A DNA stretch of 64,000 nt from Eutreptiella sp. 'Long Island Sound 2002' (lineage: Eukaryota > Protista > Euglenida). Each line of letters opens with the position of its first letter. The stretch's first letter is position 1. Shown here one piece after another: positions 1 through 41,494 of the stretch. The stretch is from positions 58,032,001 through 58,096,000 of the forward strand of contig OZ038378.1 in the NCBI GenBank assembly GCA_964036045.1, in the 5' to 3' direction. A program made the translations under genes and the position numbers. The notes below the pieces were generated by a model. The model was not told where the DNA came from, made no database searches, and saw only the letters and a program-made list of their open reading frames with translations.

Positions 1-80
1 GCGGGCAAAGGCATGCGCCCATGTCACCAGGTGTGAAAAGTGCGCACTACACCCTGCTCTACCCTTTGCTCTAACTAGTT

Positions 81-1474
81 ATGGCGGCATCGGGGGAGTA
101 CACTTGGAGGGAAGTGTGGCACAAGCTGCACAGGGGAGGGGGGGGGGCATTGGGGGGCACGAGGCCCCCCAATCTGTGTGTGATGCAACCCCTTTGTGGG
201 TCCAGTCGTATGCGTCCAAGGGGGGAAGGCGCACAAAGCACACGAAGCGGGGGCTTGAGGTGGTGGTCGTTGAGCTGGATGCCCCCCCCCGGCCCTAAGG
301 GTAAGGTTCCCCCCCCCCCCCAAGCCGTCGACAGTGGCCAAGGTGGCGGCCAAGCCCCCCCGAGGCCCTTGATGTGGGGGCCTTGGCCGCCACTATGGCC
401 CCCACGTGACGGACGCTTGCGAGACTTTGGTCGAGCAAGGAGCTGTCACGGGGGTCGAGGCCCCCCTGGCGAGGGGGAGGGCGGTCGAGCAGAGGTCTGC
501 CTTGTCGCGGGCCGAGAAGGTTCAGGGCAACACTCAGCGTGCCCTGGACCCAGCCCTCAACTTGGCCAACAAGAGGGAGGAGGAGCTGGAGACGGTGAGG
601 GGGGCCCTGAAGGAGCCAGAGGAAGGGAGGCAGAATGCCGAGGTGGAGGCGGCCGAGCTCGGGATGGAGGTGGAGGCGCTGCGGAGGAGGGGGGATGACC
701 TCCAGCAGCGCCTGGGGGTGGCTGAGGCGCACTTGTGCAGCCTCATCTCCACCCTGAGTTCCACCTACATCGCCCAGCAGGTGCTAGGTCCACCAGGGGT
801 GCACAGTGAGGGTCGCGGGAGGAGGAGTGGGAGTCAATGACTAGTGGATTTGCTCAAGGGGTTGCCTAAGTGCAATTTTTGTGGGGAGGAGCGATATGGG
901 GCCCGAGTGGACATGTGCCACTTCGGCCTGATGGGAAGCGGAAACCCCAACCCCTCGAATTTTAGGTCGAGCCACATAGCTGCTGCTACCCTGAGGCCTC
1001 ACATCACCCCCTAGGTTGTGGGGCCGAAAGAGTATTGCACTCGCCATGCTCCACCATGGTTCACATGGTGTAGCATCCAAGTTTGTTCGCCCCCAAGGGA
1101 CGGACACCATGGGCCTTCAAGCCCATTTGCGTGATGGGGCGCCCATGGCGCTGATTGTGTGTGTGGGGTCTTTCAGGGGGGGAGATTTGTGGGTGGAGAG
1201 TGGTGGCCTGTTGAATACCTCCCTCATGGACAAAAAGTGGCACACCCGTGTGTGCAAGGGTAGTGAGGCGGGGCTTGGGCAAGCAAGGCTACGCCAGAAG
1301 CCCCGGTGTTGCTCAACACCCGGGCACTACATGCTCCATTGCCATGGGAGGGTGAGCGATGGAGCGTGGTTTTTTACAGTGCACGTGGGTTGCTGCATTG
1401 CACGCCTATGGGGCGGCAGCAGCTTGTGGACCTGGGCTTCAGGGTGCCCAATGTGCTCTAACCCCTCCAGTTAG
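81..1474 (+). pseudogene. Cassette M1: coiled-coil region followed by a TET/JBP-like 2OG-Fe(II) dioxygenase domain, frameshifted
   Basis: Coiled-coil-like 406-840. Then QAHLRDGAPMALIVCVGSFRGGDLWVESGG (about 1118-1210) and, in another frame, LLNTRALHAPLPWEGERWSVVFYS (1309-1380), giving the distal His and Arg of a DSBH dioxygenase. Confidence 0.65.
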
Positions 1475-1625
1475 TGCGCACTAACCTCTTCTCTAACTAG
1501 TTATCGCGGCGTCATCGCGCTCTAACTCGGTGGTCTAACTAGTTATCGCGTGGATTGTCGCGAGGGTTATCGTGCGACAACCTAGTGTTCGCGGGGTCAT
1601 CGCGTGGGTTATCGCGCGTGTTTCT
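1470..1625. repeat. Family A inter-cassette array (palindrome GTTAGTGCGCACTAAC 1470-1485, then CTAACTAGTTATCGCG units)
   Basis: Read directly. Equivalent arrays at 39-85, 18768-18875, 20733-20915, 47815-47995, 49940-50040, 52190-52325 and 63920-64000. Confidence 0.9.
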
Positions 1626-1680
1626 TGGGCCACTGCGTCCAAACCATCTCTCATTTCCCGCCCGCTACCTCTTATTCTTC

Positions 1681-3353
1681 ATGGATACTGCTGTTAATGA
1701 CGCCTTGAGGGCTCTCAGTTCTGCTAACGTGCGGCGGTACACCGAGTTGCAACGTCCGAAGGCCCGGCGGCGGCGGTTGGAGGCGGTTCAGAGGATTTTT
1801 CGACTTCTCTTGGGGGATCCCAAAATTGAGTGTGGCACCAACACCAAAGGAGAAGTTTGTTTAGGTGGAGGGTCGTGCACTGCCCTGTCTGCCCCACTTG
1901 GTGGCCATCTTGCATTCACGGCTCAGGAACATGAAGCCCTGAGCATGCTACGCATGGCATGCGGCATGCATCTTTCCCAGCGGGCCCTTTTGCAAATGCC
2001 CCGCCGTTGTACCCAACGGGACCTAAGGACCGTTCGGCAACGGATCATGCCCTTCTTTCCCCAACCAACTATTGTAAGGTCCACCACAGGCCGCAACAGG
2101 GCGGCTGCCCATGTGCCTTTGCAGTCAAATGTGCATAATGCATTATCTATGGCCCGAGTTATTGGGAACCCCCCCCCTAGTGGCGCTGCCATTGTTGTCA
2201 TTTGGGTTAATGCGACTTCCTTGTGGAAGGCATCCTCTACCCGTGTGGATGTATGGGTCAATGTATGGGGGGCGGGGGGGGGGGGCAAATTATGCTTCGA
2301 AGGTGAAGTTATGGGCCACATGGTTTTGCATGGATGGCGGGGATGAACAGGCTTTTTTGAGAAGCCCCGACATCTCCGCCAACCCCAATCAAGAGGTCAC
2401 GGAGGTGGAGGAGGACATTGTCCTCTTTCAAAACCAATTTTTGACTTGCACTGTTATTTTGACGGGGGATGGGAAAGGGATGCAAGCAATGGGGGGGGCT
2501 GGGTCTAAGTGTTGGTTGTGCAAAGACCCCAATGGTATTGTTGAGCAACGGGGGGTGGAGTCCACCTCCAGATGGGGGGCATTTTTGAGATGTATGAACC
2601 CTGACAGACGGCCGGGGAACTACCAACATGCAGCATGCCGCATTTTAAATGGCATTGCACAGCGCATTGAGACCACCCTTCAGGCCCTCCCCCCTGGTAC
2701 CCCTGGTAAGGCCCAAGCTCTTGCAGCTTTGCAGGTCTTCAAACAAGCCCTGAAGGATGAGACCTCAGGCATTCCTGTGAGGGAACGTCTCTTCTCTGCC
2801 TCAAGGGCCCAGGAAAAAGATTTTGATATTACGAGCACCAAAGTCTTCCTTAGCCCCCCCCCCCCCTTCCGGAGGCAATTTGTGGATCGCCTCAAAGATG
2901 TGTTCCCCTAGCGAGGAGCCCCGGTGGACCTCCATTGTGCGTTGTTGTGCATGTCATGGTAAAATGCATTGAGGGTTTGTATGAGCTTTGGAAGGTGAGG
3001 GAGATGTACACTCTAAACCAAGTGGAGTGCCACCGTGCGTTGCCCACAAAGTTTTCAAAAGCTTGGGGAGACTCAGGTCGGGCCCCCCACCACGTGGATC
3101 CATTGGAGCTTGGCACATTCCACTTTTTTTGCCTGAGAAACGGAGGAAGATTTTTCAGTTTTCCTCCATCCCAACGGACCATCGGCATGGGCCTTACAAG
3201 AGGAGGCCAAAAAATTGCTTCAAGGGTTGGTCCTTGGTGAGGCCAACTATGTCCCTCCGTCACATGCACCATTGCATGTCCATGAACGCCCCGGAGCAAG
3301 GGCTTTTGGGACCATACGCAGCCAAGGCCTCGGACATTGAGGAGTTTGTGTGA
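1681..3353 (+). pseudogene. Cassette M2: RAG1/Transib/CMC-like DDE transposase (family A), frameshifted
   Basis: Reading across frames: IWVNATSLW (VDAT in copy 2), LTGDGKGMQAMGGAGSKCWLC (about 2459-2521), GNYQHAACR, then W(I)HWxLAH...SSIPTDHRHGPYK. Confidence 0.75.
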
Positions 3354-3423
3354 AGAAAGACCAAAAATCCTTTGTGCCAAGCGTTTTGCCTTGTTTGTCG
3401 TAGTGAAGGATGGAGGAGGGGTG

Positions 3424-3570
3424 CGCGATAACCGCCCGCGATAACTGCGCGATAACTGAGCTATCGCGTGATAACTAGTGCTCTAACTGGTTAGAGCAAG
3501 GTGCTCTAACTAGTTAGAGCAAGGTGCTCTAACTGCGTTTCAACTCTGTTCTAACTCTGCTCTAACTCTT
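3424..3570. repeat. Family A right-end array: CGCGATAAC units plus 23-bp tandem GTGCTCTAACTAGTTAGAGCAAG containing a 20-bp palindrome (3502-3521)
   Basis: Read directly. Motifs are in inverted orientation relative to the left arrays. Equivalents at 22705-22805, 45915-46020 and 62035-62140. Confidence 0.9.
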
Positions 3571-3765
3571 TGACCCCCCCCCCCCAAAAAAAACCACCCC
3601 TACGACGAGGGTTTATGGGGAAAGAAAGCGGATGGGGGTTTTTGAGGGTGCCGAATGCATTTTTTTTAGGTGGTTTGCCCCAAAATTGAGGCTCGGTGGG
3701 TGTTCCGGAAATTGTGCTCTAACTAGGGGTTCTGCACCACGCCCTAGAAGGCTGCATCCCATTCA

Positions 3766-3890
3766 CAGTTCCAGCAAGGGTTCTAGCAGGGGTTCCAGCG
3801 CAAAAAGGGGGTTACAGCAAGGTTCCACCAGAGGGTTCCAACGCACAAAGGGTTCCCAGCAAGGGGTTCCAGCAGGGATTCCAGCACCCT
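3766..3890. repeat. GGGGTTCCAGC array preceding cassette C
   Basis: Multiple GTTC(C/T)AGC units. Related arrays at 6035-6250, 9860-10025, 30015-30125, 32265-32470 and 34215-34410. Confidence 0.9.
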
Positions 3891-3919
3891 TGTTTCACCT
3901 TTGTTCCCTTGCATTTCAG
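3886..3919 (+). promoter_or_regulatory. Polypyrimidine tract plus AG (candidate splice/trans-splice acceptor) upstream of cassette C
   Basis: CCCTTGTTTCACCTTTGTTCCCTTGCATTTCAG, AG at 3918-3919, ATG at 3958. Conserved in copy 2 (about 30125-30155). Confidence 0.55.
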
Positions 3920-3957
3920 GCCAGATGTTTCTGTTGGCCCCCTTGGTCGGCTGGGCC

Positions 3958-5973
3958 ATGGCTACCCGGGTTGCCGTGGGCACTCGGGGCTATGCGGGCC
4001 CTGATGGGCTGGGCTGCACCAACCTCGCTGCCCACCCTGACACCAAGGTGGCGATCCCCCTAGAGACCACCATTGCCCGCATCCGCCTCACCCGCCCCAT
4101 CCTCGCCGCCGACAAGCAGGCCTGCGCCCTCACCGACACGCTGCATGGAGTCCTGGAGGACAACCCCGATGTGCCGATCGTGCAGGTCTGGCTGCATGCC
4201 GACGACGTGGAGGATGTCATCCAAGCCTGCACCAGGCTGGCGAACCTCACCGTCAACAAGACGCAACGGCGTGATGTGGGGATCGAGGTCACCTTGCTCC
4301 TCTTCGCCGCCCACAAGCCCACCACCAAAAAGGCGGGGAAGGACAAGTACCCCTTCAAGCACCCCCACCTCGACACCCTCTGTACGTGGTGGACAGCAAG
4401 CCCGCCATGTCCGTGCCCAACTACTCCCTCACTAGCCGCTCCCCCTATGGTTGGAAGCCGGAGCTCGTGGGGTTGATTACGCCGGTGCTGATGGAGAGCG
4501 AGGACGCAGTCTTGCCCCTCCCCATGTGCCACACCTTGCCGCTCATTGGGACAAGCGAACTGCCCAAGCAGCTGGACATCTTCCGGGAACTGAACGAGGA
4601 ACTCTCGGAGTTGGGTCAGACGGAGCACGTGTTCAAGGAGGAGTTGCTGGCGAAGGATGGCGACATGTTGGCGAACATGCAGATCGAGGCGGACAACGTG
4701 GGCCAGAGGTGGGGCTGCATCTTCAACGTGGCATGGCCAAGCCCAAACCGGCCACCCGATCCAGGCGACAAGGCTGCGGTGTACGCGACGATTATGACCG
4801 GCAATGGGGGCCAAGAAGGTCTTCAGCTCTTCCTCACGTTGCACTTTGGGTGCAAACAGTTCTGCAAGGCCTCTCTACGAAGTACCCGGGTGTGTTCTTC
4901 GTGAAGGTTGGGTACGTGCGGGCAACGTCGGATCGGCAACAACTATGGCATCGGGATATGCCGCTAGAATTGCAAAATGTTGGGGTGGAGCACGCCTTCT
5001 CCTGCTGCATGTCTCCCAGTCTGGACTGCTCCATGGACGGCCGCGAGAACATGTACGTGTACGGTTGTGGCTGTGGTGTTCCCTACCTGTGGCAGGAGGT
5101 CTCGATGAGTATGCTGGCGGGCGACCTGTGGATCCTCAGCAGTTACGTCATTCACCGTGGTGGGGCTGTTCTGAGAGATGCGCCGCCTGGATCAACCCGT
5201 ATCATCGCCTTTGCCGCCATTGCCACACGCCGCCTCGAGTACGAGACCACAGTGTCAATCATCCCGCCACCCTAGGCTACAGCCCCTGCGCAACAACCGT
5301 CGTCACCGTGCCCGAAGGCCCTGCACTGTACGGCAGCACAGCGCAACCGCGTGGTGAAGGCGGACGCGCCAGCGAAGTGTTTCGCCTGTGCCCATGCCTG
5401 TACATGTGGGGCAACTCTGCGGAAACTGTCAGCGGGATTACGGGGAGGATGCGCGTGCTGTGGAGGCCGCGTCTGCTGTGGAGGCCGTGCCTGCGGTGAT
5501 GGCAGCCGATGACGCAGAGGAAGTCGATGAGGGGACGCCGAAGATTGTGGAGGAGGACTTGTGCGGGTTTGCGGCTCTAGTGATGATGCTCCTGGACCAG
5601 ACAATGTTGTACACCTCCCATCGCGTAGGGCCACTTGCGGGTGATCGAGGTGTCTACCGAACCTTGCGCCCCCGAAGATTGTCTTCTGGGCCCATTTGTC
5701 CATGAGGAGGCAGAGTTGGAGGCCCCGACCCCAAGCAAGTTTCCTGTCATTGCCACGCAGCCGGGCAGCCTCATGGTGGTGCACGGAGGCCAGGTGGGTG
5801 GGATGGCAGTGGTGGAGGACACCCTGGATCGTCCGGTAGCCCAAGTACTTCGATGGGATGTGGCAGGCACCCACCCGCGGGTTGTTGACACGTTTGTCCT
5901 GGTCCAATCGGGGCTTCTGGTGGCCAACCCTGAGCGCCCGGAGGAGTACTGGTGCCCTTGCCAACAGGTATGA
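3958..5973 (+). pseudogene. Cassette C: about 670-aa protein with a PhyH-like 2OG-Fe(II) dioxygenase domain and a Cys-rich region, frameshifted
   Basis: QQLWHRD (4940-4957), MLAGDLWILSSYVIHRGGA (His 5153-5155), STRIIAF, giving the HxD...H...R pattern. Cys-rich stretch at about 5325-5425. Confidence 0.7.
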
Positions 5974-6289
5974 GCCTGCATTCCGGTGGGGCTAAAGCTT
6001 TGGGCAAAACGGGCGTTTGGAGGGGGGGGGGGGTGCTGGAAGGTTGCCGGAAGGGGTGCTGGAAGGGGTTCCAACGTTGGAACGGTCTGCTGGAAGGGCG
6101 TTAGAAAGGTGTTGGAAGGGGTTCCAGCGCTGGAAGGGTCCGCTGGCAGGGTTTCCAGTGTTAGAAGGAGGGCTCCAGCAGGGTTTCAGCCAGGGGTTCC
6201 AGCGAAGAAAGGGGTTCCAGCACGGGTTCCAGCAGGGGTTCCAGCAGCTATTGTATCACCCGTTTCACCTGCATTCCATCCTCTTTTAG

Positions 6290-6990
6290 GCCACTGTGGA
6301 TGTCTGACCGCGACTGGTATAGCGGGACGAGTCGATGGCTGAGTCACAGGCTTTGCATGGGTGAACGAGAGCAAGGAGAGTTACGTTGGTGGATGAGGGC
6401 ACACAAGGGGCGCTGCGATTGACGTGGAAGGAGACGACAATGCAGAGGACAAGGAGCAGCCGAAGGACAAAGATAAAGACAAGGGCAAGGCCAAAGCCAA
6501 GGACGAGCCAAAGGAGAAAGGCAAGGACAAAGGCCTGTGCAAGGACAAGAACAAGGACAAGGACAAGGACAAGACAACCCGGGCATCTCAGTCATTGCAG
6601 TCCCAATCGCAGACTTCCGAGCAGTCCCACCAAATGGTTGACGCTCGGGCTAAGGCTAACGAAGTGGTACATCGGTGCAAGGATTCCATGACGCAGCAGA
6701 TGAGTGTGACCCTGACAGATCGCGTTCCTTCGGCAGTGGCAACGGCGATGTCTGACCCCTCCAAGAGTAAGGCAGAGACACTGATTGGCCGGCTAACCAA
6801 GCAGCTTGAGACGGAGCGCACGCGACGGCCGAGGCCCAGTTAGTCAATGAGCGGAAACGGGTCAGGGAGTTGGAGCTGGAGAATGAGAGCATGAAAAAGC
6901 AGCTGGTGGAGAGCAACACCAAGACCGCTGAAGCAAAGCAACAGGCAGAGCACCTGTCGGCGGTGATGCCCGGCAATTACAAGAAAGCAT
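6290..6990 (+). pseudogene. Cassette D: KD-rich low-complexity plus coiled-coil protein, N-terminally deleted relative to copy 2
   Basis: ORF 6424-6843 (KDKDK repeats) continues after a frameshift into ERKRVRELELENESMKKQL. Homologous to 32.9-33.6 kb. Confidence 0.55.
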
Positions 6991-7009
6991 AGACAGTTGA
7001 GAAGCGACC

Positions 7010-7170
7010 TTTTGGGACCCAGAGATGAAAGCCGTCGGCACCTGATGATGACACCTGTCGGGACGTGGTGATTAGACTGTTGGGACTGGGAGCGGAGACC
7101 TGTTGGGACCTGGAGAGGAGACCCGTTGGGACCCGGAGAGCAGACCTGTCGGAACCTGAGATAGCACCTG
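7010..7170. repeat. About 20-bp degenerate tandem repeat (GAGA..ACCTGT(C/T)GGGAC)
   Basis: About 7-8 units downstream of the cassette D stop. Also present at 33630-33730. Confidence 0.75.
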
Positions 7171-8488
7171 GGAGCTGAGGGACGCACATGTTCATGTACG
7201 TGGCACATGTATCCTACGGGCACAGCATAGAATGCTCAGAACCGGGGCATGTTTGTGAGCGTTGCGTGGCACGTGCCCTCCGATCTTTACAGGGTAATTG
7301 TCAGCGCTGCTGGGAATATTCCTCCCAAAAACGCTTCCGATATTTTTCTATCCCTAGGGATTTCGGAAGCCAGGCTGCCAAAATTGGTCGGTGTGATGGC
7401 TCCCCACGTCGGAAGCAATGCTTCCGACCATCGGTCGGAGTTTACCCAAGCACAGACTAGGAGCATTGCTTCCAAAATGCTCTGGCACATTGCTTGGACT
7501 GGTCAGGAGCTTTGCATCCACAATTGCTTGCTAAATCCCAAGGAAATTCCAAGGGTATTGTAAAAAAGTCACCATCCGACCAACTATACACGTTGATCAT
7601 TTCCCCCCAAAGGACCCTGGTTTGACTGTTTGACTAGTTGGCTGATCTTGCTGGCACATAGGGCCTTGAGACGATGACTGTGATGGACCATGATTGCTTT
7701 TTTGCCGACCGGCATACCCGGTTTTCGAAACTGATTGCGCTACCACTGTTCACACATGAGTGTTTCCCTCTCTTGCCTGGGCCAAAAAGCTGCTCATGTA
7801 CACACGATTGACGACCACCCCCTTCCCCAACCATTGAAGTGGCAGCGCTTAAAGTAGGGTATTTTTGTTGTTTTGGCAGGTCACCGCCCCACCCGGCCCC
7901 CCTGAAAAATGGAATCCGTGGAGTTCCGGCGGCGCAACTAACCCCCGGGAAGCCAATGGGGATGAGCGACGCACGGATTCAGGTGGCCTGCCCGGGGCAT
8001 GGACGATAGTCGCTTTTTTTATAAATGAACAAATAGAACAAGAAATTGGTATCACACGGTCTTCTTACTCTTTTGTTGTGTGAGGGATTCCCCTAGACAC
8101 ATGTGCGTGGCGTGGGCCTGCCTGAACGTCCTACACGTGAGTGCATTTGAATTGGTCGCCAGCCAGCTGCTCTGCCTCAACACTGCTGCAGCGCGATGAT
8201 GTGGGCGCCGGCCCCGCGAATGTATGGTGACCTGCTAGTTCTTACGAACCACGTCCGTGTCGTGGATAAGGCAGTCACTATATATTCGCCGGGTCTGCTT
8301 GCAGCGACCCTGCCACAGCGAGGTGGACCAGAAAGGTTGGGGCCGTCCTGCGTGGCCGTCATAGGCAGCTCGGAAATTTTCCAGCTTTGTGTTTCTAGTT
8401 TGAATGCTTTTTGCTGCCCCAACCCGGGGTCGTCGTACCGGGAAGCCCAGCGAAGTCAAAAATTGGTGTCAGGGACCTTGCTGAGTCC

Positions 8489-8680
8489 CAGGGTCATGTG
8501 CATGGCAAGGGCGTGCCTGAATCGCCCCACACGTGTGTGCATCACTGGAGCCAGGGACATGTGCATGGCCAGGGCTTGCCTCAGTCACCCCACACGTGAG
8601 TGCATCACTGGAGCTAGGGACATGTGCATGGCTAGGGCCTGTCTAAATCGCCCCACACGTGCGTGCATCACTAGAGCCAG
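8489..8680. repeat. 63-bp tandem repeat x3
   Basis: Units start at 8489, 8552 and 8615 (AGGGACATGTGCATGG...CACACGTG.GTGCATCACTGGAGC). A degenerate fourth copy lies near 8090-8150. Confidence 0.9.
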
Positions 8681-9240
8681 GACAGGGGCTGGATACTCTG
8701 TGGTCACTTTGATGTGGGCAAACCCCCCATGTACGAGGCCCGCGGTCCCCTGTGGGTGGCGGTCCAGCTGCAGCCTCGACCGTCACCTGCCCTTGCCCCC
8801 CCCCAGAAGAAGCAGCGGAGTGTGCTGTCGTATTGATCAAAGAGTATTCAATTTTAAACAAGACTTAAACAAGAGGGCAAGGAACAACATTGACTATGAT
8901 GTTCGCGAAGCGGGGCTAACCGGGCTAATCGGGGGTTGGGGGGTGGGGCTGGGGGTGAGGGGGAACCCGGCGCTCTGTGATCGCCCCAGGATCGGGGGCT
9001 TGTGATTGGCCACGCTTGGCCATGGTAGCCGCGGCAGCTTCTCTTTGAGGAGTGGCGAAGCATTGTACATGTCCTCACTATATATGCGTCAAATTGCCCA
9101 AAAATGCCCAAATACGTGTGTGTGGGGGGGGGGTCGATTGTTTCTTCATCCCTGGCGTTTTCGTCAGAAATCGCCCCCAAAAATGCTTCCGATATTTTTT
9201 CATCCCTAGGGATTTCGGAAGGCTTCCTCCCGGCTTCTGC

Positions 9241-9300
9241 CGGGGTTTCGGTCGGGGTTTCGGTCGGGGTTTCGGTCGGGGTTTCGGTTGGGGTTTCGGT
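9241..9300. repeat. 12-bp tandem repeat CGGGGTTTCGGT x5
   Basis: Read directly. Confidence 0.95.
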
Positions 9301-10044
9301 CGGAAAAGCGGTGCCGATATTTTCGCATCACTAGGGATTCCAGGAGCGATTGCCTGGCATGTCGGCTGGAAAATTTACAGGTCGATCGTCAGCAACGCTG
9401 GGAATCATGCCAAGATTTTCGGTCCCAAAACAAAAATTCTACGCTTTGCGCTTGAGCGACATGTGGTGCGGTGCCATTGTGCCGACGGTAGTGCACCACG
9501 TTGAACGGAAACCTTCTTTAGTTTTAGCCCCTAGGTTGCGCGTTACCTCGCGTAGGACATTGGTTGCGCTGTGCACGATGTCCCCCACGTGGTGTAACGA
9601 GTGGGAGGCTTCACATAGCCCACCCCTTGGGGATGTCACCAAGATTTACGCCCTATATGCATGCATTCATTGAAAATTTTGGTATATTATTGTAGTCTCT
9701 TTGATTTTGGACTGAAGTGAAGGGGTGGTGCTATGGGGTGCAACACATGAATACGCTGTGCGACATTGCAAAGTGTTGACCTTGACGCTGCACTGTGCCT
9801 GTGCTTGTACCTTGGGGGTGGCCTCAATGAGAGGGCAAGGAAAAACAAAGGGGGGGTGTCAGTGCTAGGAGGGGGTGCTAGAAGTGGTGCTGGAAGGGGT
9901 TCCAGCGCTTGAAAGGTCCGCGAGAAGGGTCCGCTGGAAGGGGGTTCTAGCGCTGGAAGGTGCTACAACAAGGGTTCCAGCAAAGGGTTCCAGCGCAGAA
10001 AGGGGTTCCAGCAAGGGGTTCCTGCATGGGTTTGAGGGGTCACA

Positions 10045-10071
10045 CCTTTCCCGTTTGTCGCAGACACCATG
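10045..10071 (+). promoter_or_regulatory. Polypyrimidine tract plus CAG immediately before the transposase B ATG
   Basis: CCTTTCCCGTTTGTCGCAGACACCATG (AG 10062-10063, ATG 10069). Copy 2 has GTCCCGTTTGTCACAGAAACCATG (AG 34435-34436, ATG 34442). Confidence 0.6.
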
Positions 10072-11650
10072 GAAAAGGCGGTTACCGCACTTGTGGGAAG
10101 CATCCCACACCTCAAGCCGTACACGGCCATCAAGGGAAAGGCCCGAGCAGAGCAGCGGCACCACATACAGACCATCATGCGAGAACTTTTAGTGGATCCC
10201 GAGGCAGTTGTCGTTGAAGATGGTGGGGGATTGTACATCCGTTTGGCCGGGCACGACGACGATGAGGACCCTCGTGTAGTGCGTGCAATCGGACTGTGGG
10301 CCACCGGTAGGAGATTGAAGTTATCAATACGGTAGATGTTGGCCCTCTTGCGCGAATGTACGCGTCGTAATCTTGCCGAAGCGAGCACAAGGTTAACACC
10401 GTACTCCACCACAACCTACGCTATCAATGGCCCCAACATGGTCGAGCGACGGTGCGCACCGACAACAACACTAGAAGACATCGTTATCACGCAGTTGAAG
10501 ATACCCGAGACCCTACCCTAGGGGAGCTTCAAGTGGAAGCTGAGAAGATTTGGATTTTCATATGCCCCGATGCAATGGCATCGTGCCACACATCGGTCAC
10601 TAAGATCAATGTTTTTGTAAGCTGCTGGGCCTTAGGGTTTTTTGCTGCGGGAGACATCCATAGATTGGTGATGTGGGCGTGCATGGGTGGCCCTGATGAC
10701 GCCGCATGGCTGCAGGCCTTAGATGAGGATGCGGGCCTAAATGCCCAAACCATCCACCTAAAGGAAAGTTGTACATTCCGTGTGAAAAACGAAACCAAAA
10801 AGTTTCAATGTAAACTGACAGGGGATGGGAAACTAATGATGGTGCCGAACGGGGGGGGGGGGGGTGTTGATGGGGCTCCCCCGATGCCACCGAGTTGGTG
10901 CCGATAGAGGGCACGGTAAACAAAATTCAATGGGGGGCATTTCTTCGAAGTGTGTGTATTCGCATCTGAGACTATGCACACGCATGTTGTAGGGTAACCA
11001 ATGCCTTCAAGAAGCGTCTGACAAAAACTATTATCACCTTGACAGTGGGTGTTGTTGGAGTGCGGCGAGTCGCTAGTGAATTTGCCAATATGTGGTCTAC
11101 CCTTTTAGCACATGTAAAGCATGTGCCTCCTGCTGCCAGGCTTTTCGAAAACACCACTAAGGCAGGGCAATCTGACATCAGCACCTCTATGTTGTTCTTA
11201 ACAGACCCCAAGTACCATGTTCGAATTTTCAATGGCTTCAGGAACCATTTTTCTAACACCATGTTTGGTGGTGTCCTCTTGCCGACACTAATTGAAGTCT
11301 TGCTGCGCAATATGCGTAGCCTATATGCCTTGTGCAGGCAAAAGACACCATTGACTAATGGTGAGGTGCAAGAGGCCAAGAGTCACTGCCGTAAAATCAG
11401 TGAGGCATGGCTCAAGTTGGGTTGGAAGTCAACCCCATGGGTCCACTGGACAGTGGCCCATTGTGGAGCAGTGCTCCAAAAATATCGCAACCTTTATGTG
11501 TTCAGCAGTATACTTGCGAAACACAGGCATAAGGCTTTCAAACTTGCTGTCAAAAACAGCATGCTTGGGCGGTGCCTTCGTTGCCCACGAGTTTCACGAC
11601 GTGGTCTCACCCATGTGTTGAACATGGAGACCCTTGATGTGGGGTTATGA
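10069..11650 (+). pseudogene. Cassette B: RAG1/Transib/CMC-like DDE transposase, copy 1, disrupted
   Basis: ICPDA (Asp 10569), CKLTGDGK (Asp 10824), (G)DYAHACCR, STPWVHWTVAH (His 11444 and 11459), then FSSILAKHRHKAF (catalytic position is K here, E in copy 2). Homologous to family A M2. Confidence 0.8.
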
Positions 11651-11799
11651 TAGTGAGCGGCCCAGCAAAGGCTTGTACTTGGCGAGGCCACAAGGGACCA
11701 AAGAAAAAGGCACTGCATGTATGCTTGAGAAGCCAAATTGGAACCTGGTGGATGCATTTGATGCCCTTCTTGCAAAATTCCTTGGCGCAGAAAACCCCC

Positions 11800-11945
11800 C
11801 ACAGAAAGGGTGCCAAAACGGGGTTGGAGCGCACAAAGGGTGTGCAGAAAGGGTGCACAAAGGGGGTTCTAGCGCAGAAATGGGGGGTGCACAAAGGGCG
11901 CACAAAGGGTGCAGAAAGGGTGCACAAGCGGTGCTAGAACCCCCC
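11800..11945. repeat. AAAGGGTGCAC/AGAAAGGG-type array at the right end of C-D-B
   Basis: Read directly. Also at 36140-36290. Confidence 0.75.
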
Positions 11946-12749
11946 TTCAAGCAAAAGGAGGGGGTGTAGAAAATCCGTGAAAACGGACCATTTGGGACAA
12001 CAGTGAAAGTTAGCCACAAAGGGGGGGAAAACATGTGGTGATTGGCCCCAAACCAGTTTTCAACCACATAAGGTGGTGTGGCTTCGGTAAACATGCAAAA
12101 AGGGCGCTAGAACGGGGGGGTTCTTGCGCAAACCCCCTACTTAGACGGCCCAAGTTGCCCACCCCGGTAAATCAGCCCAAAACACCCAAAAAGGGCCATT
12201 ACGGCCGGTGGGAAATTTCATAGCCTGTTTTTTCAGTCATTCAGACGCGTAGCTGAATTTGAATGCTTGACAGCGTGTTTTTGTGGTTCTCATATCCACG
12301 CACACAAACCTAGGTGACTGCGCATGGTCAATTTTTACGCTTCTGTGAACAAGTTTTGCTTTGTGCTGTGTTGTGTTTGTCCTCCTATGTACCCTTCTCT
12401 TGGAATCTCGAAAAGTGTCTAGAACCAGACACTCTTTGAAATTCCACCCCTGTCAAACCCAGTTTTTGAGGTCGCAGTGTCTGGTTCTAGACAAACTAAA
12501 CAATTTACCCCCTTCCAGGGGGGGGGGGGGATCACCACGTGTCTGTTCCCAGTGTCAACCGTCCTCTGTACACCCCCATAACATGGGGAATGTGTGTGCC
12601 TCCAGACTTTTTGGTGAAATCCCGTGATTAAGATCCACATTTTTTTGAACGGTGTCTGGTTCCGGACACTCTCCACTAATTGTCTGGTCACTGAGCAGGT
12701 ATGTTCTGTTGTTGTTCACCGATTTGTTTAGTCTAGTTCTCTTCCACTG

Positions 12750-18089: not shown

Positions 18090-20099
18090 AGCTGCTCAGT
18101 GACCAGGATATCTATTCATAACACATAAACACTATGGCACCCTGTTGGCGTGCCAGTCTGCTCTCTGGCTCCTAGTGGTCTATTTTGACGATTTTTTCTT
18201 CACCAACAGGCGATTGACAGTCCTTTGTTCATGTTTTATGACATTTGGTTGCGGACCATAGTTCCTTTTGTGGAATATAGTAATTTTTCACCAGCTTACT
18301 CATCGTGTGTTTGGAAGCAGACAACTTTTTGCGGTTACTGTCCCTTTGCCGCACGCTTTGGTAAGATATGTCTGTTTCCAGACGAACTTCAGTATTTCAC
18401 TGTGTGCAGAACAAAATTTGATTGACATGCTACGTGTCGACGAGTAGTGCCTCCGCTGGTGTAGTGATATTGAAGCGTCCATAGCCACACATGCATTCCC
18501 TGGGGTTCCTTCTCAGAATTTGACTATTTCCCCCATATTTCACAGGGCCCAGCCTCAAGTTGGTGTCGTGCGCAAAGTGCCAAAAAGTATATGGGGGTAG
18601 TCAAAAACGAGCGGAAACATACGTGCGCTGCTGGTTGCTAAAATTTCACCCTTGTAGAACGCGTTTTTGATGACCGTCATTTGGTGACATTTTTGTCGGG
18701 GGTGCATTGGGGGAGGCGGGGGGGGGGGGGGGCAATTGGGCCGTCTAGGTCCTAGCGACGCACCCCAAACTAGTCATCGCGCTAGGTTATCCCGTTCTAA
18801 CTAGTTATTGCGGGGGTTATCGCGGGGGGTTTTCGCGCTCTAAGTTGTCGCGCGAGTTATCGCGGTAGCTATCACGTGTTGTTTTATTATTTGTTTCGTC
18901 CTTTCCAAGCCACAGTCATTCAGCTGCCGCGTCTGTTCACCAAGGCGGTGGCCGAGGCAACCGCAGCAGGAGCGGCAGAAGCAGCAAGAGAATGGGCTGC
19001 CTAGCCAGTGGCGGCCCGTGCGGTGGTGGAGGGGGAGGAGATCAAGAAGCTGGCCGAGGGCGCAGCTTGGCGGTGGGGGGAACCAGCAGACGAGGCTTGC
19101 CGGCAGGGCGGGACCGGATGGTACCGAGACGTCACCATCACGGAAAAGTAGGGGGGGGTGGAGAGGAAGACCAACCTCACCCTCCCCTCCTATGTGTCGG
19201 TTGGGGGGGAAACGGCCAAATGGCCGAATGTGCCTCATGGGGAAACGGTTGCGGCTTTTTTGCGTTTGTTTGGGATGAGCGCCCCCCCCTCCCCCCCAAG
19301 GCAAAAACTATTTTTTGCTGAGGCTGTGCTTCGTCGATGAAGCAACGGGGGATGGCAGTGCAAGTCTGGGCGGGAGGTGTGGCACAAACTGCACAAGGGG
19401 GAGGACATCCACCAGGTGGGAGGTACGGACCCGTGCAAAGTGTGCTTGATGCAACCGCTTTGTGGGCCTAGGAGTATGCGCCCAAGGGGGGAAGGCCCAC
19501 AGAGCGGGGGCATGAACTGGTGGTGGTGGAGGCGGAGGAGCCCCCCCCCCGACCCCTAAGGGTAAAGGCCCCGCCGCGTCTTCCAAGCCATCGAAGGTGG
19601 CCAAGGTGGCGGCCCAGCTCCCTCGCCTCCCGCCCTTGATGTGGTGGCCTTGGCCGCCAGAGTAGCCACCCACGTGACGGACGCTTGCCAAACTTTGGTG
19701 GAGCAAGCGGCCGTCACGGGGGTGGAGGCCGCATTGGCCAAGGGGAGGGCGGCCGACCATTGGTCGGCCTCGGCGAGGGCAGAGAAGGTCCAGGGCAACT
19801 CTCAGCGTGCCCTTGACCGTGCCCTCGAAGTGGCGAACAAGAGGGGGGAGGAGCTGGAGGCGGTGAGGGGTGACCCGAAGGAGGCCTAGGAGGGGAGGCA
19901 GAAGGCCGAGGTGGAGGCGGCCCGGCCAAGGGGGCAGGTGGAGGCCTTGCGGAGTACGAGGGGTGACCTCCAGCAGCGCTTCGGGGTGGCTGAGGCGCAG
20001 GTCCGTAGCCTCACCTCCACTCTCAGTGCCACCTTCGCCGCCCAGCAGGGGGTTGGTCTACCAGGGATGCAGAGTTAGGGTAGCTACACGACCCGAAGT

Positions 20100-20738
20100 C
20101 AATGACTCGTGGGTTTGCTGAGGGGGTTGCCTAAGGGCATTTTCCGTGGGAAGGAGCGATACGGGGCCCAAGTGGATATGTGCCACTTGGGCGTCGTCGG
20201 AAGTGGAAACCCCAACCCCTCTAATTTTATGTGGACTAGGATGGCTGCTGCTACCTTGAGGCATCTCCTCACCCCCTTGGTTGCGGGGCTCAATGAGTTT
20301 TGCACTCGCAATGCACCACCATCCTTCACATGGTGCAGCATCCAAGTTGTTCGCCCCCAAGGGACGGACACCATGGGCCTTCACGCCCATTTGCGTGATG
20401 GGGCGCCCATGGCGCTTATTGTGTGTGTGGGTTCTTTCAAGGGGGGAGATTTCTGGGTGGAGAGTGGTGGCCTGCCGAATTCCTCCCTCAGGAGAAAAAG
20501 CGGCACTCCCGTGTGTGCAAGGGTAGTGAGGTTGGGGGTTGGGCATGCAAGGCCAAGGCAGAAGCCCCGGTGTTGTTCAACACCCGGGCACTACACGCTT
20601 CATTGCCATGGGAGGGTGAGCGATGGAGCGCGATTTTTTATAGTGCTGGGGGGCTGCTGCATTGCACGCCTACGTGGCGGCAGCAGCTTGTGGAGCTTGG
20701 TTCTAGGCTCCCCAATGTGCTCTAACCTCTCCAGTTAG
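20100..20738 (+). pseudogene. M1 TET/JBP-like dioxygenase domain, copy 2
   Basis: FTWCSIQVV, LHAHLRD (20379-20399), VGSFKGGDFWVESGG, then after a frameshift LFNTRALHASLPWEGERWSAIFYS (His 20594, Arg 20621). Confidence 0.7.
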
Positions 20739-20977
20739 TGCGCACTAGCCTCTGCTCTAACTAGTTACCGCGGCAGTTATCACGCTCTAACTGGGTGCCC
20801 TAACGAGTTGTCGCGCTTGGTTATCGCGTTTTAACTAGTTATGGCGGGGGGCTATCGCGGGGGTTACCGCGCAATGACCTAGTCATGGTGCGAGTTATCG
20901 CGTGGGTTATCGCGTGTGTTTTTTGGGGGCCTGCGTGCAAGCCATCCCTCATTTTCGCCCAGGACCTCTTATTATTC

Positions 20978-22629
20978 ATGGATATTCCTCTTATTGAGGC
21001 CCTGTGGGCTCTAACTGCAGTCACTTTGCGGCGCTACACCGATTTGCAATGTCCCAAGGCCCGGCGGCGGCGGTTGAAGGTTGTTCAGAGGCTTGTTCGA
21101 GTTCTCTTGGGGGATCCCAACATTGTGTGTGGCACCAAAACCAAGGGAGAAGTCTGTTTAAGTGGTGGGTCGTGCACAGCCCTCTCTGCCCCACTTGGTG
21201 GCCATCTTGCATTCGCAGCTCAGAGGCATGAGGCCGTGAGCATGCTATGCATGTTTCCTAGCGGGCCTTTTTGCGAATGCGTCGCCGTTGTACCCAACGG
21301 GACCTAAGGACCGTTCGGCAACGGATCATGCCCTACTTTCCCCAAGCAACTATTATCAGGTCCACTACACGCCGCAATAGTGTAGGTGCCCATGTGCCTT
21401 TGCAGTCAATTGTGCATACTGCAATATCTATGGCCCGAGTTTTCGGGAAACCCCCCCCCCGCTAGCGGTGTTGCCAATGTTGTCATCTCAGTGGATGCGA
21501 CTTGCTTGTGGAAGGCATCCTCTACCCGTGCGGTTGTATGGGCCAATGTATGGGGGGGGGGGCAAAGTATGCTGCGAAGGTGAAGCTATGGGCCTCATGG
21601 TTTTGCATGGATGGCGGGGACGAACGCGCTTCGTTGAGAAGCCCTGACATCTCTGCCAACCTCAATCAAGAGGTCGGGGAGGTGGAGGAGGACATTGTCC
21701 TCTTCCAAAACCAATTTTTGACTTGAATTGTTATTTCGACGGGGGATAGGAAACAGTTGCAAGCAATTCGCGGGGCTGGCTCCAACTGTTGGTTGTGCAA
21801 AGACCCCAATGGTATTGTTACGCAAAGGGTGCTGGAGTTCACCTCCAGATGGGGGGCATTTTTTAGATGTGTGAACCCTGACAGACGGCCGGGGGACTAC
21901 CAACATGTAACATGCCGAATTCTAAACGGCATTGCAATGCGCACTGAGACCACCCTTCAGGCCCTCCCCCCTGATACCCCTGGTAAGGCCCAAGCTCTTG
22001 CAGCTTTGCAGGTCTTGAAACAAGCCCTCAAGGATGCGACCTCAGGCATTCCTCTGAGGGAACGTCTCCCCTCGGCCTCAAGGGCCCAGGAAAAAGATTT
22101 TGATCTTACGAGCACCAAAGTGTTCCTCACCCCCCCCCCCTTTCCAAAGGCAATTTGTGGATTGCCTCAAAGAGCATGTCCCCTCCGTGAGGACCCCTGG
22201 TGGACCTCCATTATCGGTTGTTGTGCATTTCATGGTGAAATGCATTGAGGGTTTGTATGAGCTTTTGAGTGTGAGGGAGATGTACACTCTAGCCCAAGTG
22301 GAGTGCCACCGTGCGTTGCCCACAAAGTTTTCCAAAGCTTGGGGAGACTCAGGTTGGTCCTCCACCAGGTGGATCCATTGGTGCTTGGCACATTCTACTT
22401 TTTTTTTGCTGAGAAGTGGAGGAACATTTTTCAGTTTTCCTCCATCCGCACAGAGTATACGCATGGGCTTTACAAGAGGAGCCTCAAAAATTGTTTCAAG
22501 GGTGGGTCTTTGGTGAGGCCAAGTCTGTCCCTGTGCCACATGCACCATTGCATGTCCATGAACGCCTTGGAGCAAGGGCTTTTGGGACCATAGGCAGCCA
22601 AGGCCTCGGAAATTCAGGAGTTTGTGTGA
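20978..22629 (+). pseudogene. Family A transposase M2, copy 2
   Basis: VDATCLW (21491), CWLC, GDYQHVTCR, WIHWCLAH, then after a 2-nt poly-T slip FSSIRTEYTH. Confidence 0.75.
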
Positions 22630-22961
22630 AGAAAGACCAAAAATGCTTTGTGCCAAGCGTTTTGCCTTGTTTGTCCTAGTGAGGGATGGAGGAGAGGTGC
22701 GCGATGAGTACCCGCCATAACTGCGCGATAACTGAGTTGTTGCGCGATAACTAGTGCTTTAACTAGTTAGAGCAAGGTGCTCTAAGTCTGCTCTAAGTCT
22801 GCTCGAACTCAAAAGACCACTTTGCCCCCCCCCCCCCTACAAACCACGCCTCTGACGAGGGTTGTGTGGGGAAAGAAAGGGGATGGGGGGTTTTTTGAGG
22901 GTGCCGAATGCATTTTTTTTAGGTGGTTTGCCCCAAAATTGAGGCTAGGTGGGTGTTCCAA

Positions 22962-23517
22962 AAATTGTGCTCTAACTAGGGGTTACGCACCACGCCCTAG
23001 AACGCCACATCCCATAGGTAATCTTTTCCCACAGGACGTGGCACATGCACGTGCCTTGCACAAAGCCCATGGAACCAAAGGGATAAAAGCACCCACGTAC
23101 CCGCACACCATTCACACTACAGGGACACACAATTGGGTAATAGTAGTCATCCGCTCGACCCCCCATTCTGAAGCTACCCACAACGAGCAACAACTCAATG
23201 CTGATTTTCCGGACAGCTTGAACGACTGGAAAATACAACAAATTGTGCTCTAACTAGCGGTTACGCACCACGCCCTAGAACGCCACATCCCATAGGTAAT
23301 CTTTTCCCACAGGACGTGGCACATGCACGTGCCTTGCACAAAGCCCATGGAACCAAAGGGATAAAAGCACCCACATACCCGTAAACCATGCACACTACAG
23401 GGACACACAATTGGGTAATAGTAGTCATCCGCTCGACCCCCCATTCTGAAGCTACCCACAGCGAGCAACAACTCAATGCTGATTTTCCGGACAGCTTGAA
23501 CGACTGGAAAATACAAC
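22962..23517. repeat. 278-bp direct tandem duplication (22962-23239 and 23240-23517)
   Basis: Near-identical units starting AAATTGTGCTCTAACTAG and ending GAAAATACAAC. Confidence 0.95.
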
Positions 23518-24587
23518 GCAAGCCTTATATGCGGTGGCTTGTGAGGTGTGCGTTCCACAAACAACTCACAGAAGCTGTGCTGAACGACCACAATCCATGG
23601 CAGCAGTACGTTACAGCATGAGGCATCATGCTCCATCCAATGAACGCATTCCGAATTTCTATTGATGCTAAGCGGGCCCTTCCCCCGGTGAAGATGTCGC
23701 CACTGAAAACCTGTCTCTTGGCGTGCCGGAGAGCACAGGCACACTTTGCTTTGCCCAACTCTATTACGCTACATGTCCCGTTTGTAACTAAAGCTGAATG
23801 GCTGCAGTTACGGAAGCCATGTGCTGAGTTTTTCCGTGATACACCATACCCCAGAGCGTTAGGGCCGTACGTAGCAGCTATGCTAGGAATACCCCTTACC
23901 ATACTCCTGAAAATGTTACGTGCCTTCTGTGAAGATTGACTCACTGATGGTTACCAGCACTACCTGCAGAGGTCCACTAACACAGCGTGCTATGGCTGCG
24001 TGAAGGATCGCCAGGCAACACAATATGAAGGAGCATGGTTGTTCCAAGAAAGAGAATGTGGTGTCACAGTATGGTGAGCGTTACGAGGTAGGTTTCCGTG
24101 CCCAAAAGAAGTGCAGAACGCTGCCGTGCCGCTGGCAACTACTTCCAAAAATATCTTCCTGTGTGAATGCCATCCGAGGCCGACTACAAAAAATATGTGT
24201 CTTTCCTATCAAACTTGCAGCCCGCATGCATGAAAATGCGATTACCATGATATATGGGTATAACAACCTACATTCTACCCTCCCCCCTCAACACCACCTC
24301 AAATCTTTTCACAAAGAAGACTTTGAACACGTGCTTGTGCGACTCGATTAGAACACGCATTGTTTTGCACCCGTTTGCTCCACATTTTTCTTGTCAGCTA
24401 GCGGTTACAAGCCTAGACGCCGGCAACGGCCGGTTGTTCCATACCTTCCCTTCGATCACCCATGTGTACACTATGTACCTCTTATAATTCTACCCGCTAG
24501 TACTGTACCACTAGTTGTGCCTCGTCTCAACTTTTGTTTGCGTCTCCAATGTTTAGGCGGTTTTCCTGTCTTTGTTTTTGTTAACCC

Positions 24588-25202
24588 ATGGACGGGGTTG
24601 AGTGGCCTAATCAGAACCAACAAGGGTCAGCCGAGGAGGGACTGGCAGCACAAGCCAAAGAAATTCAAGAACTCAGAGAGCAACTCGCCCGAGTGGCAGT
24701 GAAGGAGGGGCCCCGCTTGCCCCCGATGAGCGTGCCAGAGATAAACCGAGCCCTCGAGAAGCCCCAATTGGCACAGTGGATGAGACTCATGCTGTCCAAC
24801 ATCAAGGCGTACGTGCGCCTTAGAGCAGGTGAGGTGGGGGAGATCCCCCGCCCGAGCGAGTTCGGCGGCCAGGCAACGGAGGCCGCGGTCGACCCAAGGG
24901 AACAGCTGGCGTGGAGGGTCTGGGGTTGCGTGTCCCAGTCCCAGGCTGCGTATGCTCGCAGGTATGCAGGAACGCACGGGAAGTCCAGCTCCGAGTCCAG
25001 CCAGTACGCCACGTTGGAGGAGGCATGGAAGGAGCAAGGATCGGCTTTCACGTGGGGGAGCGTGAAATTCAGGGAGGTGGGAGGGGTACTGCAGTGGCAA
25101 TCGAGGCAGGGCGACTGGATCCCTGTGGACTCGCCGCCGAGCGGAGGGTGCCAGAGGTGCGCGCAGCGGGGCTCCCCCGACGAACGCCATTGGCACTTGT
25201 GA
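24588..25202 (+). CDS. Gag-like protein with C-terminal zinc knuckle
   Basis: N-terminal coiled coil. CQRC...H WHL* is followed in frame by C (TGA probably from TGG), giving Cx2Cx9Hx4C. Confidence 0.6.
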   Translation: MDGVEWPNQNQQGSAEEGLAAQAKEIQELREQLARVAVKEGPRLPPMSVPEINRALEKPQLAQWMRLMLSNIKAYVRLRAGEVGEIPRPSEFGGQATEAAVDPREQLAWRVWGCVSQSQAAYARRYAGTHGKSSSESSQYATLEEAWKEQGSAFTWGSVKFREVGGVLQWQSRQGDWIPVDSPPSGGCQRCAQRGSPDERHWHL

Positions 25203-25339
25203 TGCCCACACTGGTCCTGACAGGACCGGCTGGAGACCGGACCGGCCGCCCTGGGCTCCGGCGCTGCGGACAAGGCGGCGGAGCTGCGGGCGCTCGCCCG
25301 CCGGTGGGAGACAGCAGCCCGGACGGACGACCCCTGCTC

Positions 25340-26774: not shown

Positions 26775-27097
26775 GTGGTGGGCCGTGTCCACCGCACATA
26801 CACGGGGCCGCGTCGCGCTAAGGTGGTCGTGGGTGGTACGCAGGCCGTGCGATCCCGAGCCCCCGCACGCCGTCAAGCTGGGAGACCTCGTTTGGCCCAG
26901 CAGATCGCCGCGCCGGAGCCCAAGCGCATCAAGCTCGGGCCAGGCGGGCATGTCCGGACGCCGGAGACGCAAGGTCCGGTGGAGGGTGCCTTCGTGGCTG
27001 CAGCTGAGCGTCTCAAGGCCAAGGCTAGGGGGCGGGCGGGCCCAGTGGCGTCGCCCCCCCCCCCCCCCTCTGTAAGGGTCCCGACAGGGGTGGGAGG

Positions 27098-28256: not shown

Positions 28257-28699
28257 TCCTGTGCAGTTTTCTTGTGCTCTGCTTGTGCAAACTACCCCTG
28301 CTCAAGAAGCACCTTGGCTCTACATATATGCGCACCGGGTTGTCTCTTATGGCCACATTGCTGAAAGGCTACCACTTCTCCACATATCATGGTACCCCCC
28401 CACCGCACGTCTTCAGTTGAGAAGTCAAACTGGGACGCCTTGTGGCAGTATGTGTTTATGCACGAAGTTGATGAGACGTCGCGCCCCATACATCTTTCCC
28501 CCGTCTAGCCGAACACCGGTGCGCCACGGGATGCGCCCCCAAACGAAAAAAAGAAATGGGCTCTGCCAGCGGTCATTCTTCCTGGAAAAATAAAAGGTTG
28601 ACGGCATCCCAGCGATTGCAAGTGGAGCTTGCGAAACCGCGGGAAATTTTTACATAGGCCAAACACGCACGGCGCACCGTCCTCAGAAAGGGTGGCCGA

Positions 28700-29800: not shown

Positions 29801-30159
29801 CTCAAGACCTTCCATGGGGTGCGCCGCTAGAAGGGGTACGCAGAAACTCCCCTCATTTTTGGGTACCGCAAGAACCACGATGTGCACGCGTTTTCAATGC
29901 CTAAGAGTCACTTCACCACTTGCTATAAGTGTCCTAAATCTGAAGCAAGCCGAGGTTGTGAAGGGTCACACGCTACGTTGAATTCCCAAAAATGACCAAA
30001 AGCGGACAAAGGTGGGTTCCAGCAGGGGTTCAAGCGCAGAAAGGGGGGTTCCAGCAACGTTCCAGCAGTGGGTTCCAGCGCACAAAGGGGTTCCAGCAAG
30101 GGGTTCCAGCAGGGGTTTCAGCACCTTTGTTTCACCATTGTTCCCTTGCATTTCAGCCC

Positions 30160-41450: not shown

Positions 41451-41494
41451 TCCCTTGGATGGGACACATGCATGAATCTTTTTGTTCTAATTTT

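Follow-up and report, generated by a model that had tools for sequence, protein, structure and literature searches.

V(D)J recombination goes back to RAG1-fold transposases, whose clade is poorly sampled outside animals. CACTA elements carry short direct and inverted subterminal repeat arrays that bind an element-encoded protein, and they are further characterized by CACTA termini, a 3-bp target-site duplication (TSD), and a Transposase_21-type transposase. Transib elements generate a 5-bp TSD and have heptamer-like CAC... ends (see also PMC12730594). The fungal ESTA, EnSpm, and Plavaka elements, cut-and-paste transposons of the CACTA/Mirage/Chapaev/Transib (CMCT) clade that are RAG1-like by HHpred, harbor a gene for a TET/JBP dioxygenase by the transposase gene (Kojima 2025, PMC12730594). 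The elements described here, designated family A and family C-D-B, are found in a stretch of 64,000 nucleotides (nt) from Eutreptiella sp. 'Long Island Sound 2002' (contig OZ038378.1, positions 58,032,001 to 58,096,000 of the forward strand), hereafter the window. They likewise pair a transposase of predicted RAG1-like fold with an Fe(II)/2-oxoglutarate (2OG) dioxygenase, in this case of the phytanoyl-CoA dioxygenase (PhyH) type.

The region very probably consists of defunct copies of one cut-and-paste transposon lineage, represented by two sister families. An element measures 6.7–7.1 kb, is bounded by 36–38-bp terminal inverted repeats (TIRs) and 2-bp TSDs, and contains three gene units in the same orientation. 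In family A these are M0, M1a plus M1b, and M2, and in C-D-B they are C, D, and B; the first unit encodes a dioxygenase with a Cys-rich tail, the second a coiled-coil protein, and the third a DDE transposase of 540–580 aa. The sequence evidence establishes this anatomy, mobility (from TIRs and TSDs), the predicted fold of the transposase, gene linkage, and, partly by transitive homology, the family to which the dioxygenase belongs. In the proposed mechanism, the transposase would bind the TIRs and the arrays of short repeats, by analogy with CACTA subterminal repeats, and would excise and integrate the element with a 2-bp stagger. The dioxygenase would be a conserved accessory factor, most likely oxidizing a chromatin, DNA, or protein target, and this oxidation would favor transposition or escape from host silencing. 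M1a and M1b may be joined by stop read-through.

Intact copies are found in the ENA assembly ERZ25074135 (contigs of up to 5 Mb, 29–49x coverage), which represents either the source genome or one very closely related to it and has the same families at 75–88% nucleotide identity to the window. Ten loci were fetched from it with one M1b sequence as the query, and family-A copies, 99% identical to one another, are present in all ten. The dioxygenase gene co-occurs with the transposase genome-wide, in agreement with a preliminary description of the window that had proposed cargo-carrying transposons with 2OG-Fe(II) dioxygenase genes. Six loci (L014, L016, L018, L020, L022, and L023) hold a full-length, unrearranged element of 7107 bp, the left TIR being missing from L014, and the order M0, M1a/M1b, transposase is common to all six. 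In the remaining loci, family A has undergone truncation, inversion, deletion, or nesting, and L015, L019, L021, and L024 are rearranged. Perfect 36-bp TIRs, starting with TGGGATGCAGCG, are present in all five young insertions checked at both ends, and each of the five is flanked by a 2-bp TSD at an unrelated site (TG, CA, TA, AT, and AG). L022 retains four intact open reading frames (ORFs), namely M0 (680 amino acids, aa), M1a (413 aa), M1b (210 aa), and the transposase (552 aa); in most other young copies some ORFs are split or shortened in the gene calls. At 90% identity, the protein clusters contain 275 members for the transposase, 235 for M1b, and 220 and 491 for M0, and family A is present in hundreds of copies.

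The termini of family A are 5'-TGGGATGC...GCATCCCA-3' and those of C-D-B are 5'-TGGCGTGC...GCACGCCA-3'. The complete C-D-B copy of the window, CDB2, has 38-nt TIRs with a CA flank at each side. The element ends are TGG...CCA, and the TSD is 2 bp long and not TA-specific. Both families are real, recently active cut-and-paste DNA transposons.

The window itself is repeat-rich eukaryotic DNA of ~54% G+C in which no tRNA and no Rfam family was found. Self-BLAST resolves four copies of family A (1–3761 and 18768–23014, and on the minus strand 45703–52492 and 61843–64000; pairwise identity 75–83%) and two copies of C-D-B (3768–12134 and 29815–36502; identity 78–81%), with no nucleotide similarity between the two families in the window. 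The same two sets of 4 and 2 copies, without mutual nucleotide similarity, had been recognized by eye in the preliminary description. None of the window copies has kept its genes open, all being pseudogenes interrupted by frameshifts and stop codons; there are at least three frame changes in the A1 transposase and three in-frame stops in B2, and A3 has many more. A1 is the 3' two-thirds of a family-A copy, cut by the window start, and is 81–86% identical to the intact L014 copy over window 92–1476 and 1435–3761. CDB1 starts 7 nt past the right end of A1 and, compared with CDB2, lacks ~200 bp at the start and ~20 bp at the end. The features of these copies are as follows.

1–3761, plus strand: A1, old family-A copy (self-BLAST), the 5' portion, which comprises M0 and the beginning of M1a, lying beyond the window start.
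75–837, plus strand: M1a remnant, coiled-coil protein (tblastn with intact M1a), followed by an in-frame TGA at 838–840 and then CTAG.
841–1452, plus strand: M1b remnant, 210-aa domain, with four stop codons (tblastn with intact M1b, 61% identity).
1453–1640, plus strand: array preceding the family-A transposase, with GTGCTCTAAC and GTTATCGCG units.
1681–3350, plus strand: M2, family-A transposase pseudogene, with at least three frame changes.
3478–3566, plus strand: A1 3' subterminal array of palindromic 23-bp units, the counterpart of which is inverted in young copies.
3726–3761, plus strand: A1 right TIR, ending ...GCATCCCA, in agreement with the perfect 36-bp TIR of young copies.
3768–12134, plus strand: CDB1, C-D-B copy truncated at both ends, 78–81% identical to CDB2.
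3778–3886, plus strand: array preceding C, with GGGTTCCAGCA units at a 43-bp period.
3958–5970, plus strand: C, putative PhyH-type Fe(II)/2OG dioxygenase pseudogene (WHRD ... IHRGG ... R), orthologue of M0.
6119–6246, plus strand: array preceding D.
6354–7092, plus strand: D remnant, K/D-rich coiled-coil ORF.
7092–9464, no strand assigned: foreign 2.37 kb inside CDB1, not in CDB2 and not part of the element.
9862–10026, plus strand: array preceding B.
10069–11650, plus strand: B, C-D-B transposase pseudogene, with frameshifts and stops.
11805–11934, plus strand: C-D-B 3' array of GGGTGCACAAA units in direct orientation.
29815–36502, plus strand: CDB2, complete C-D-B element of 6.69 kb, with TIRs at 29815–29852 and 36465–36502.
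45703–52492, minus strand: A3, complete old family-A copy of 6.79 kb, bounded by TIRs (45703 and 52492), its four genes all decayed.

The extra 2.37 kb of CDB1 contains a 63-bp tandem repeat (8488–8681), a 12-bp repeat (9241–9303), and a 46-bp direct repeat (7324–7369 and 9176–9221), and may be another inserted element.

The transposases of the two families are homologous, as had been proposed. Between the window copies, tblastn gives expectation (E) values of 2e-12 to 6e-17, and with the intact family-A transposase (552 aa; L014 9104–10762) as the query, the C-D-B transposase is matched at 1e-42 to 1e-45. A profile of the C-terminal half, searched against 1.84 billion representative proteins, retrieves 315 homologues, 191 of them with E <1e-10 and the closest in ERZ25074135; the intact ones are 541–576 aa long. 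A scan of Joint Genome Institute metagenome contigs yields one short locus only. Ten full-length homologues match neither the transposase families of Pfam nor RAG1 at E up to 1, giving weak chance matches to unrelated families, and a Pfam search of all long ORF pieces of the window returns nothing for the elements. The 475-aa transposase P0155 is encoded without any sequence difference on 14 contigs, which come from at least eight ENA metagenome assemblies, one of them labelled aquatic metagenome, and its host or element appears to be widespread.

The class of the enzyme is indicated by its predicted fold. The AlphaFold2 model of P0005, an intact 576-aa homologue, was built from a 27-sequence alignment and has a mean predicted local distance difference test score (pLDDT) of 82 and a predicted template modeling score (pTM) of 0.76. 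In a Foldseek search of the PDB, all 49 matches with E ≤1e-3 are to RAG1, an amphioxus RAG-like transposase (BbRAGL), or one Transib (HzTransib), which are the only solved structures matched by the fold. The best match is 6cg0_C (E 2.8e-13), TM-scores are 0.55–0.60 over ~590 columns, and the next fold is Hermes, at E 1.9e-3. The conserved blocks follow the order DATPLW...SATRCDV (first D), TGDGK (second D), CWxC, GDxVHxxCR, WVHWxxAHS (H-x4-H), and FSSIPTE (E), and five of these motifs (DATPLW, TGDGK, CWxC, WVHWxxAHS, and FSSIPTE) vary little or not at all among the 27 homologues. As modeled, the transposase has the RAG1/Transib fold with the D...D...CxxC...Hx4H...E order of the CMCT clade. With respect to that clade, the motif order is present and the 2-bp TSD falls within the range of 2–5 bp, whereas the ends are 5'-TG...CA-3' rather than 5'-CA...TG-3'.

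The dioxygenase family can be recognized most readily in L003, a 4.8-kb contig from a different metagenome that carries a TIR-like end (391–427, C-D-B-like), an array, an intact 569-aa transposase, a second array, and an ORF that matches Pfam PhyH with 27.9 bits against a curated cut-off of 22. The window gene C matches this ORF with E 3e-15 across WHRD ... GDxxxLSxxxIHRGG ... R. Intact M0 matches it with 3e-21, and matches the ORF beside the transposase of L002 with 7e-25. The match between M0 and C2 spans the whole length. A joint family profile searched against the PDB finds the PhyH-type enzymes 4nao (8.5e-4) and AndA, and intact M0 also touches 2OG-FeII_Oxy_3. In an alignment of six sequences with 4nao, the iron triad and the distal arginine occur in order, as WHRD/LHRD ... 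(I/V)HRG(G/S) ... R. Judged by this homology, M0 and C are orthologous PhyH-type Fe(II)/2OG dioxygenases. Two of the three dioxygenase cargo genes listed in the preliminary description are retained, M1 being the unconfirmed one (see below), and the failure of the folds that would have told against it is not seen for the transposase, M0, or C. Its attribution of the dioxygenases to the TET/JBP type is rejected in favor of PhyH, as neither the window pieces nor the intact proteins match Tet_JBP (PF12851) at E up to 10.

The C-terminal regions of the PhyH-like proteins share a Cys-rich motif and one additional conserved block. The motif, C-x2-C ... C-x2-C ... LC-x2-H ... C-x2-C, gives a weak IBR-like match (E 0.03) and is found at L022 2890–3549, L003 4200–4781, and L001 8901–9461. 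L014 (13508–16264 and 1723–3741) additionally holds a very divergent PhyH-motif ORF (HRD ... IHRGAGG) beside a distant transposase-like fragment, which suggests more such families in the genome.

M1 comprises two parts in the same frame, the coiled-coil protein M1a and the 210-aa domain M1b. UGA-CUAG is a strong context for stop read-through, and the corresponding TGA followed by CTAG lies between the two parts, without variation among A1 and 11 of 11 young copies (window 838–844; L014 7995–8004; L015–L024 4995–5004). M1a-M1b is, by sequence context, a candidate for fusion by programmed stop read-through. The resemblance of M1b to a dioxygenase is limited to the motif HSHLRD ... GGEFWVE ... 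LHAPLPWEGERWS, which has H-x-x-D vs the canonical H-x-D. Neither Pfam nor a PDB profile search gives a match for M1b, its comparison with the PhyH-like genes in hhalign has a probability of 0.2%, and its AlphaFold2 model (pLDDT 33) is unusable. Two word-based searches find M1b relatives in the same assembly only. D is a K/D-rich, coiled-coil ORF, and both families share the gene order dioxygenase, coiled-coil protein, transposase.

Upstream of each ORF lies an array of about ten copies of a family-specific 9–12-bp motif. GGGTTCCAGCA occurs 34 times (2.4 expected) and GTGCTCTAAC 35 times (2.9 expected), the array motifs being enriched ~12–14 fold over shuffled sequence. In young family-A copies, GTTATCGCG is found in forward orientation 9–11 times ahead of M0, of M1a, and of the transposase, and in reverse orientation five times after the transposase. 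The plan of two array-ORF units followed by array, transposase, and inverted array, which had been ascribed to both families, holds for family A; in C-D-B, the last array is built of the variant GGGTGCACAAA and is directly oriented. The array-transposase-inverted array plan is also conserved in relatives from other metagenomes, each of which uses a unit of its own. An array-like unit is also present within each TIR. Because the same kind of motif recurs in the TIRs, the arrays are most likely transposase-binding sites, like CACTA subterminal repeats, with the GTTATCGCG and GCTCTAAC units as candidate binding units. On sequence, this reading takes precedence over the per-gene expression or recombination modules suggested in the preliminary description.

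A pyrimidine tract ending in AG lies 5–40 nt upstream of each examined ORF start, directly behind the array (M0, the family-A transposase, C, B, and the L003 transposase). These tracts are found at window 1650–1680, 3920–3957, 10040–10068, and 34415–34441, at L014 4700–4742 and 9060–9103, and at L003 790–831. The tract looks like a splice acceptor, either of an intron in the 5' untranslated region or for trans-splicing, and, because one stands behind every array, a second array role in expression or splicing is possible. It is doubtful, although conceivable, that the arrays are mainly per-gene expression modules (promoter, enhancer, or outron-like spacer) to which transposase binding is secondary, giving rise to cassette mRNAs, possibly via spliced-leader trans-splicing of a polycistron. 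The position of the tracts would agree with such modules, as would the occurrence of arrays upstream of every gene and not just at the element ends. However, the family-A array 3' of the transposase is inverted and has no gene downstream, the array unit is also part of the TIRs, and no dinoflagellate spliced-leader relic is present in the window or the loci. The expression and transposase-binding roles of the arrays are compatible.

At least four divergent families have the dioxygenase gene beside that of the transposase, namely A, C-D-B, L002, and L003, one of which is from another metagenome. Across the four, identities are 30–40% for the transposases and 24–33% for the dioxygenases, and the two genes have thus diverged similarly. 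A search with intact M0 retrieves relatives from the same genome only. By sequence, the dioxygenase fits better with an old, vertically kept partner gene than with repeated cargo capture, and, rather than three independent acquisitions of cargo, M0 and C are orthologous partner genes common to both families and to further ones.

CMCT-clade DNA transposons often capture genes, and the dioxygenase could on that account be host cargo, passively captured in the manner of many CACTA or Pack-type elements and with no role in the life cycle of the element. In fungi, TET/JBP genes have moved between transposon superfamilies (PMC12730594), and the short contigs of the P0155 relatives (L005–L012) show no dioxygenase within 1–2 kb of the transposase. 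Passive capture is nevertheless improbable. The same PhyH-like family with its Cys-rich tail stands next to the transposase in A, C-D-B, L002, and L003, with the further PhyH-motif ORF in L014; its divergence parallels that of the transposase; and hundreds of young copies retain an intact dioxygenase ORF. At the other extreme, and only tentatively, the dioxygenase with its zinc-finger-like tail might be an obligatory, co-evolved partner of the RAG1-fold transposase (cf. RAG2/RAG1 and TnpA/CACTA), oxidizing DNA, chromatin, or the transposase so as to license transposition or erase silencing marks at the arrays. The pair would then constitute a new two-component, superfamily-level lineage widespread in aquatic protists.

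An origin of the plan from separate small elements, nested by chance or juxtaposed in tandem, the outcome against which the cargo-transposon proposal was to be judged, is scarcely credible and is refuted for family A: although A1 directly abuts CDB1 in the window, L001 has C joined to half of B together with a tandem array of partial units, and the four loci named above are rearranged, a single gene order runs through the six full-length loci, five independent full-length insertions at unrelated sites share an identical internal order and a single TIR pair with 2-bp TSDs (five of five), and in CDB2 a single TIR pair encloses C-D-B.

Several points weigh against the reading of the region as dead copies of such a two-family lineage with a RAG1-fold transposase, a PhyH-type partner, and transposase-binding arrays. 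A profile of 27 homologues, searched against all PDB sequences, does not match RAG1 or HzTransib at E up to 10, and, because the matches include no CACTA, Mirage, or Chapaev structure, the fold assigns the protein to the RAG1/CMCT class and not specifically to the neighborhood of Transib. Intact M0 alone scores 19.2 bits against PhyH (cut-off 22; profile positions 12–202 of 213), and the window C and M0 remnants have no Pfam match, so that the PhyH assignment is made partly by transitive homology. The partner gene may not be universal, because the P0155 contigs show none nearby. The binding role of the arrays is deduced from their motifs.

Other repeats and neighbors complete the picture of these loci. 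L001 (10934–20771) contains at least eight tandem copies, with a ~1.23-kb period, of a unit made of an array and the 3' half of the B gene, and this repeat is a partial element amplified into a satellite. The telomere-like flank of L020 is not a telomere array, and no Pfam match was found in 10 ORFs flanking the loci. In the window, a ~10-kb segmental duplication (37702–47896 and 53440–64000, 94% identical, ~16 kb spacing) makes up most of the right half and contains A3, A4, and a 439-aa ORF without a Pfam match (43934–45250, minus strand). A 278-bp unit is repeated twice in tandem at 22962–23517 (97% identical) and includes the right TIR of A2. Positions 24585–28417 are a retroelement remnant, in which the ORF at 27029–28417 matches the reverse transcriptase family PF00078 (E 5e-11).

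The elements add a clearly active family of ~550-aa transposases of predicted RAG1 fold, with hundreds of near-identical copies, a 2-bp stagger, and TGG ends. The lineage is invisible to Pfam yet has more than 300 relatives in environmental data. Transposon-borne oxidizing enzymes, described as TET/JBP in fungi, would now include another enzyme family and occur in another eukaryotic group, and a concrete protein pair together with a defined DNA motif is made available for study.

Compared with Transib, RAG1, and RAG-like proteins (6pqn–6pqy, 6b40, 4wwx, 6cg0), the transposase shows a predicted fold match over its whole length and a comparable size (~550 aa vs a core of ~600 aa), and to this extent the RAG1/Transib-like core of the preliminary description is upheld. 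In contrast to Transib in the strict sense, a designation that is rejected, the TSD is 2 bp rather than 5 bp, the ends are TGG...CCA, and there is no sequence-level match. The 36–38-bp TIRs with subterminal and internal arrays are also distinct from Transib/RAG1, as is the presence of three or four genes, among which no RAG2-like partner is seen. CACTA/En-Spm elements share with the present ones the clade-level motifs, a multigene organization, frequent internal rearrangement, and subterminal repeat arrays, the last being a non-defining likeness. Here, however, the arrays also lie between genes, and membership in CACTA/EnSpm is rejected because there are no CACTA ends, no 3-bp TSD, and no Pfam match to a CACTA transposase.

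Members of the PhyH family (PF05721; EasH-like 4nao, AndA 5zm2) resemble the element dioxygenases in the HxD...H...R signature and in a profile match over the double-stranded beta-helix core. The element proteins differ in their length of 530–680 aa, with a long N-terminal region, the Cys-rich motif, and the extra C-terminal block, and in being encoded inside a transposon.

The fungal elements (Kojima 2025, PMC12730594) are the closest in organization, in that an Fe(II)/2OG dioxygenase gene adjoins a CMCT-clade transposase. ESTA has the 2-bp TSD in common with the present families, and the proposed logic, in which an oxidizing enzyme would aid escape from silencing, is the same. A full-text literature search found no paper joining phytanoyl-CoA dioxygenase with RAG1-like transposons. 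The combination, of which the preliminary description knew no other case, had nonetheless been published for fungal RAG1-like/CMCT transposons with TET/JBP (PMC12730594). The present elements depart from these in that the host is a non-fungal aquatic eukaryote, the TSDs are not TA-specific, the termini are TGG...CCA, and the dioxygenase is PhyH-type vs TET/JBP and seems vertically linked rather than swapped among superfamilies. Thus, the elements are not categorically new, a dioxygenase with a RAG1-like transposon being known from fungi; the array before every gene further sets them apart.

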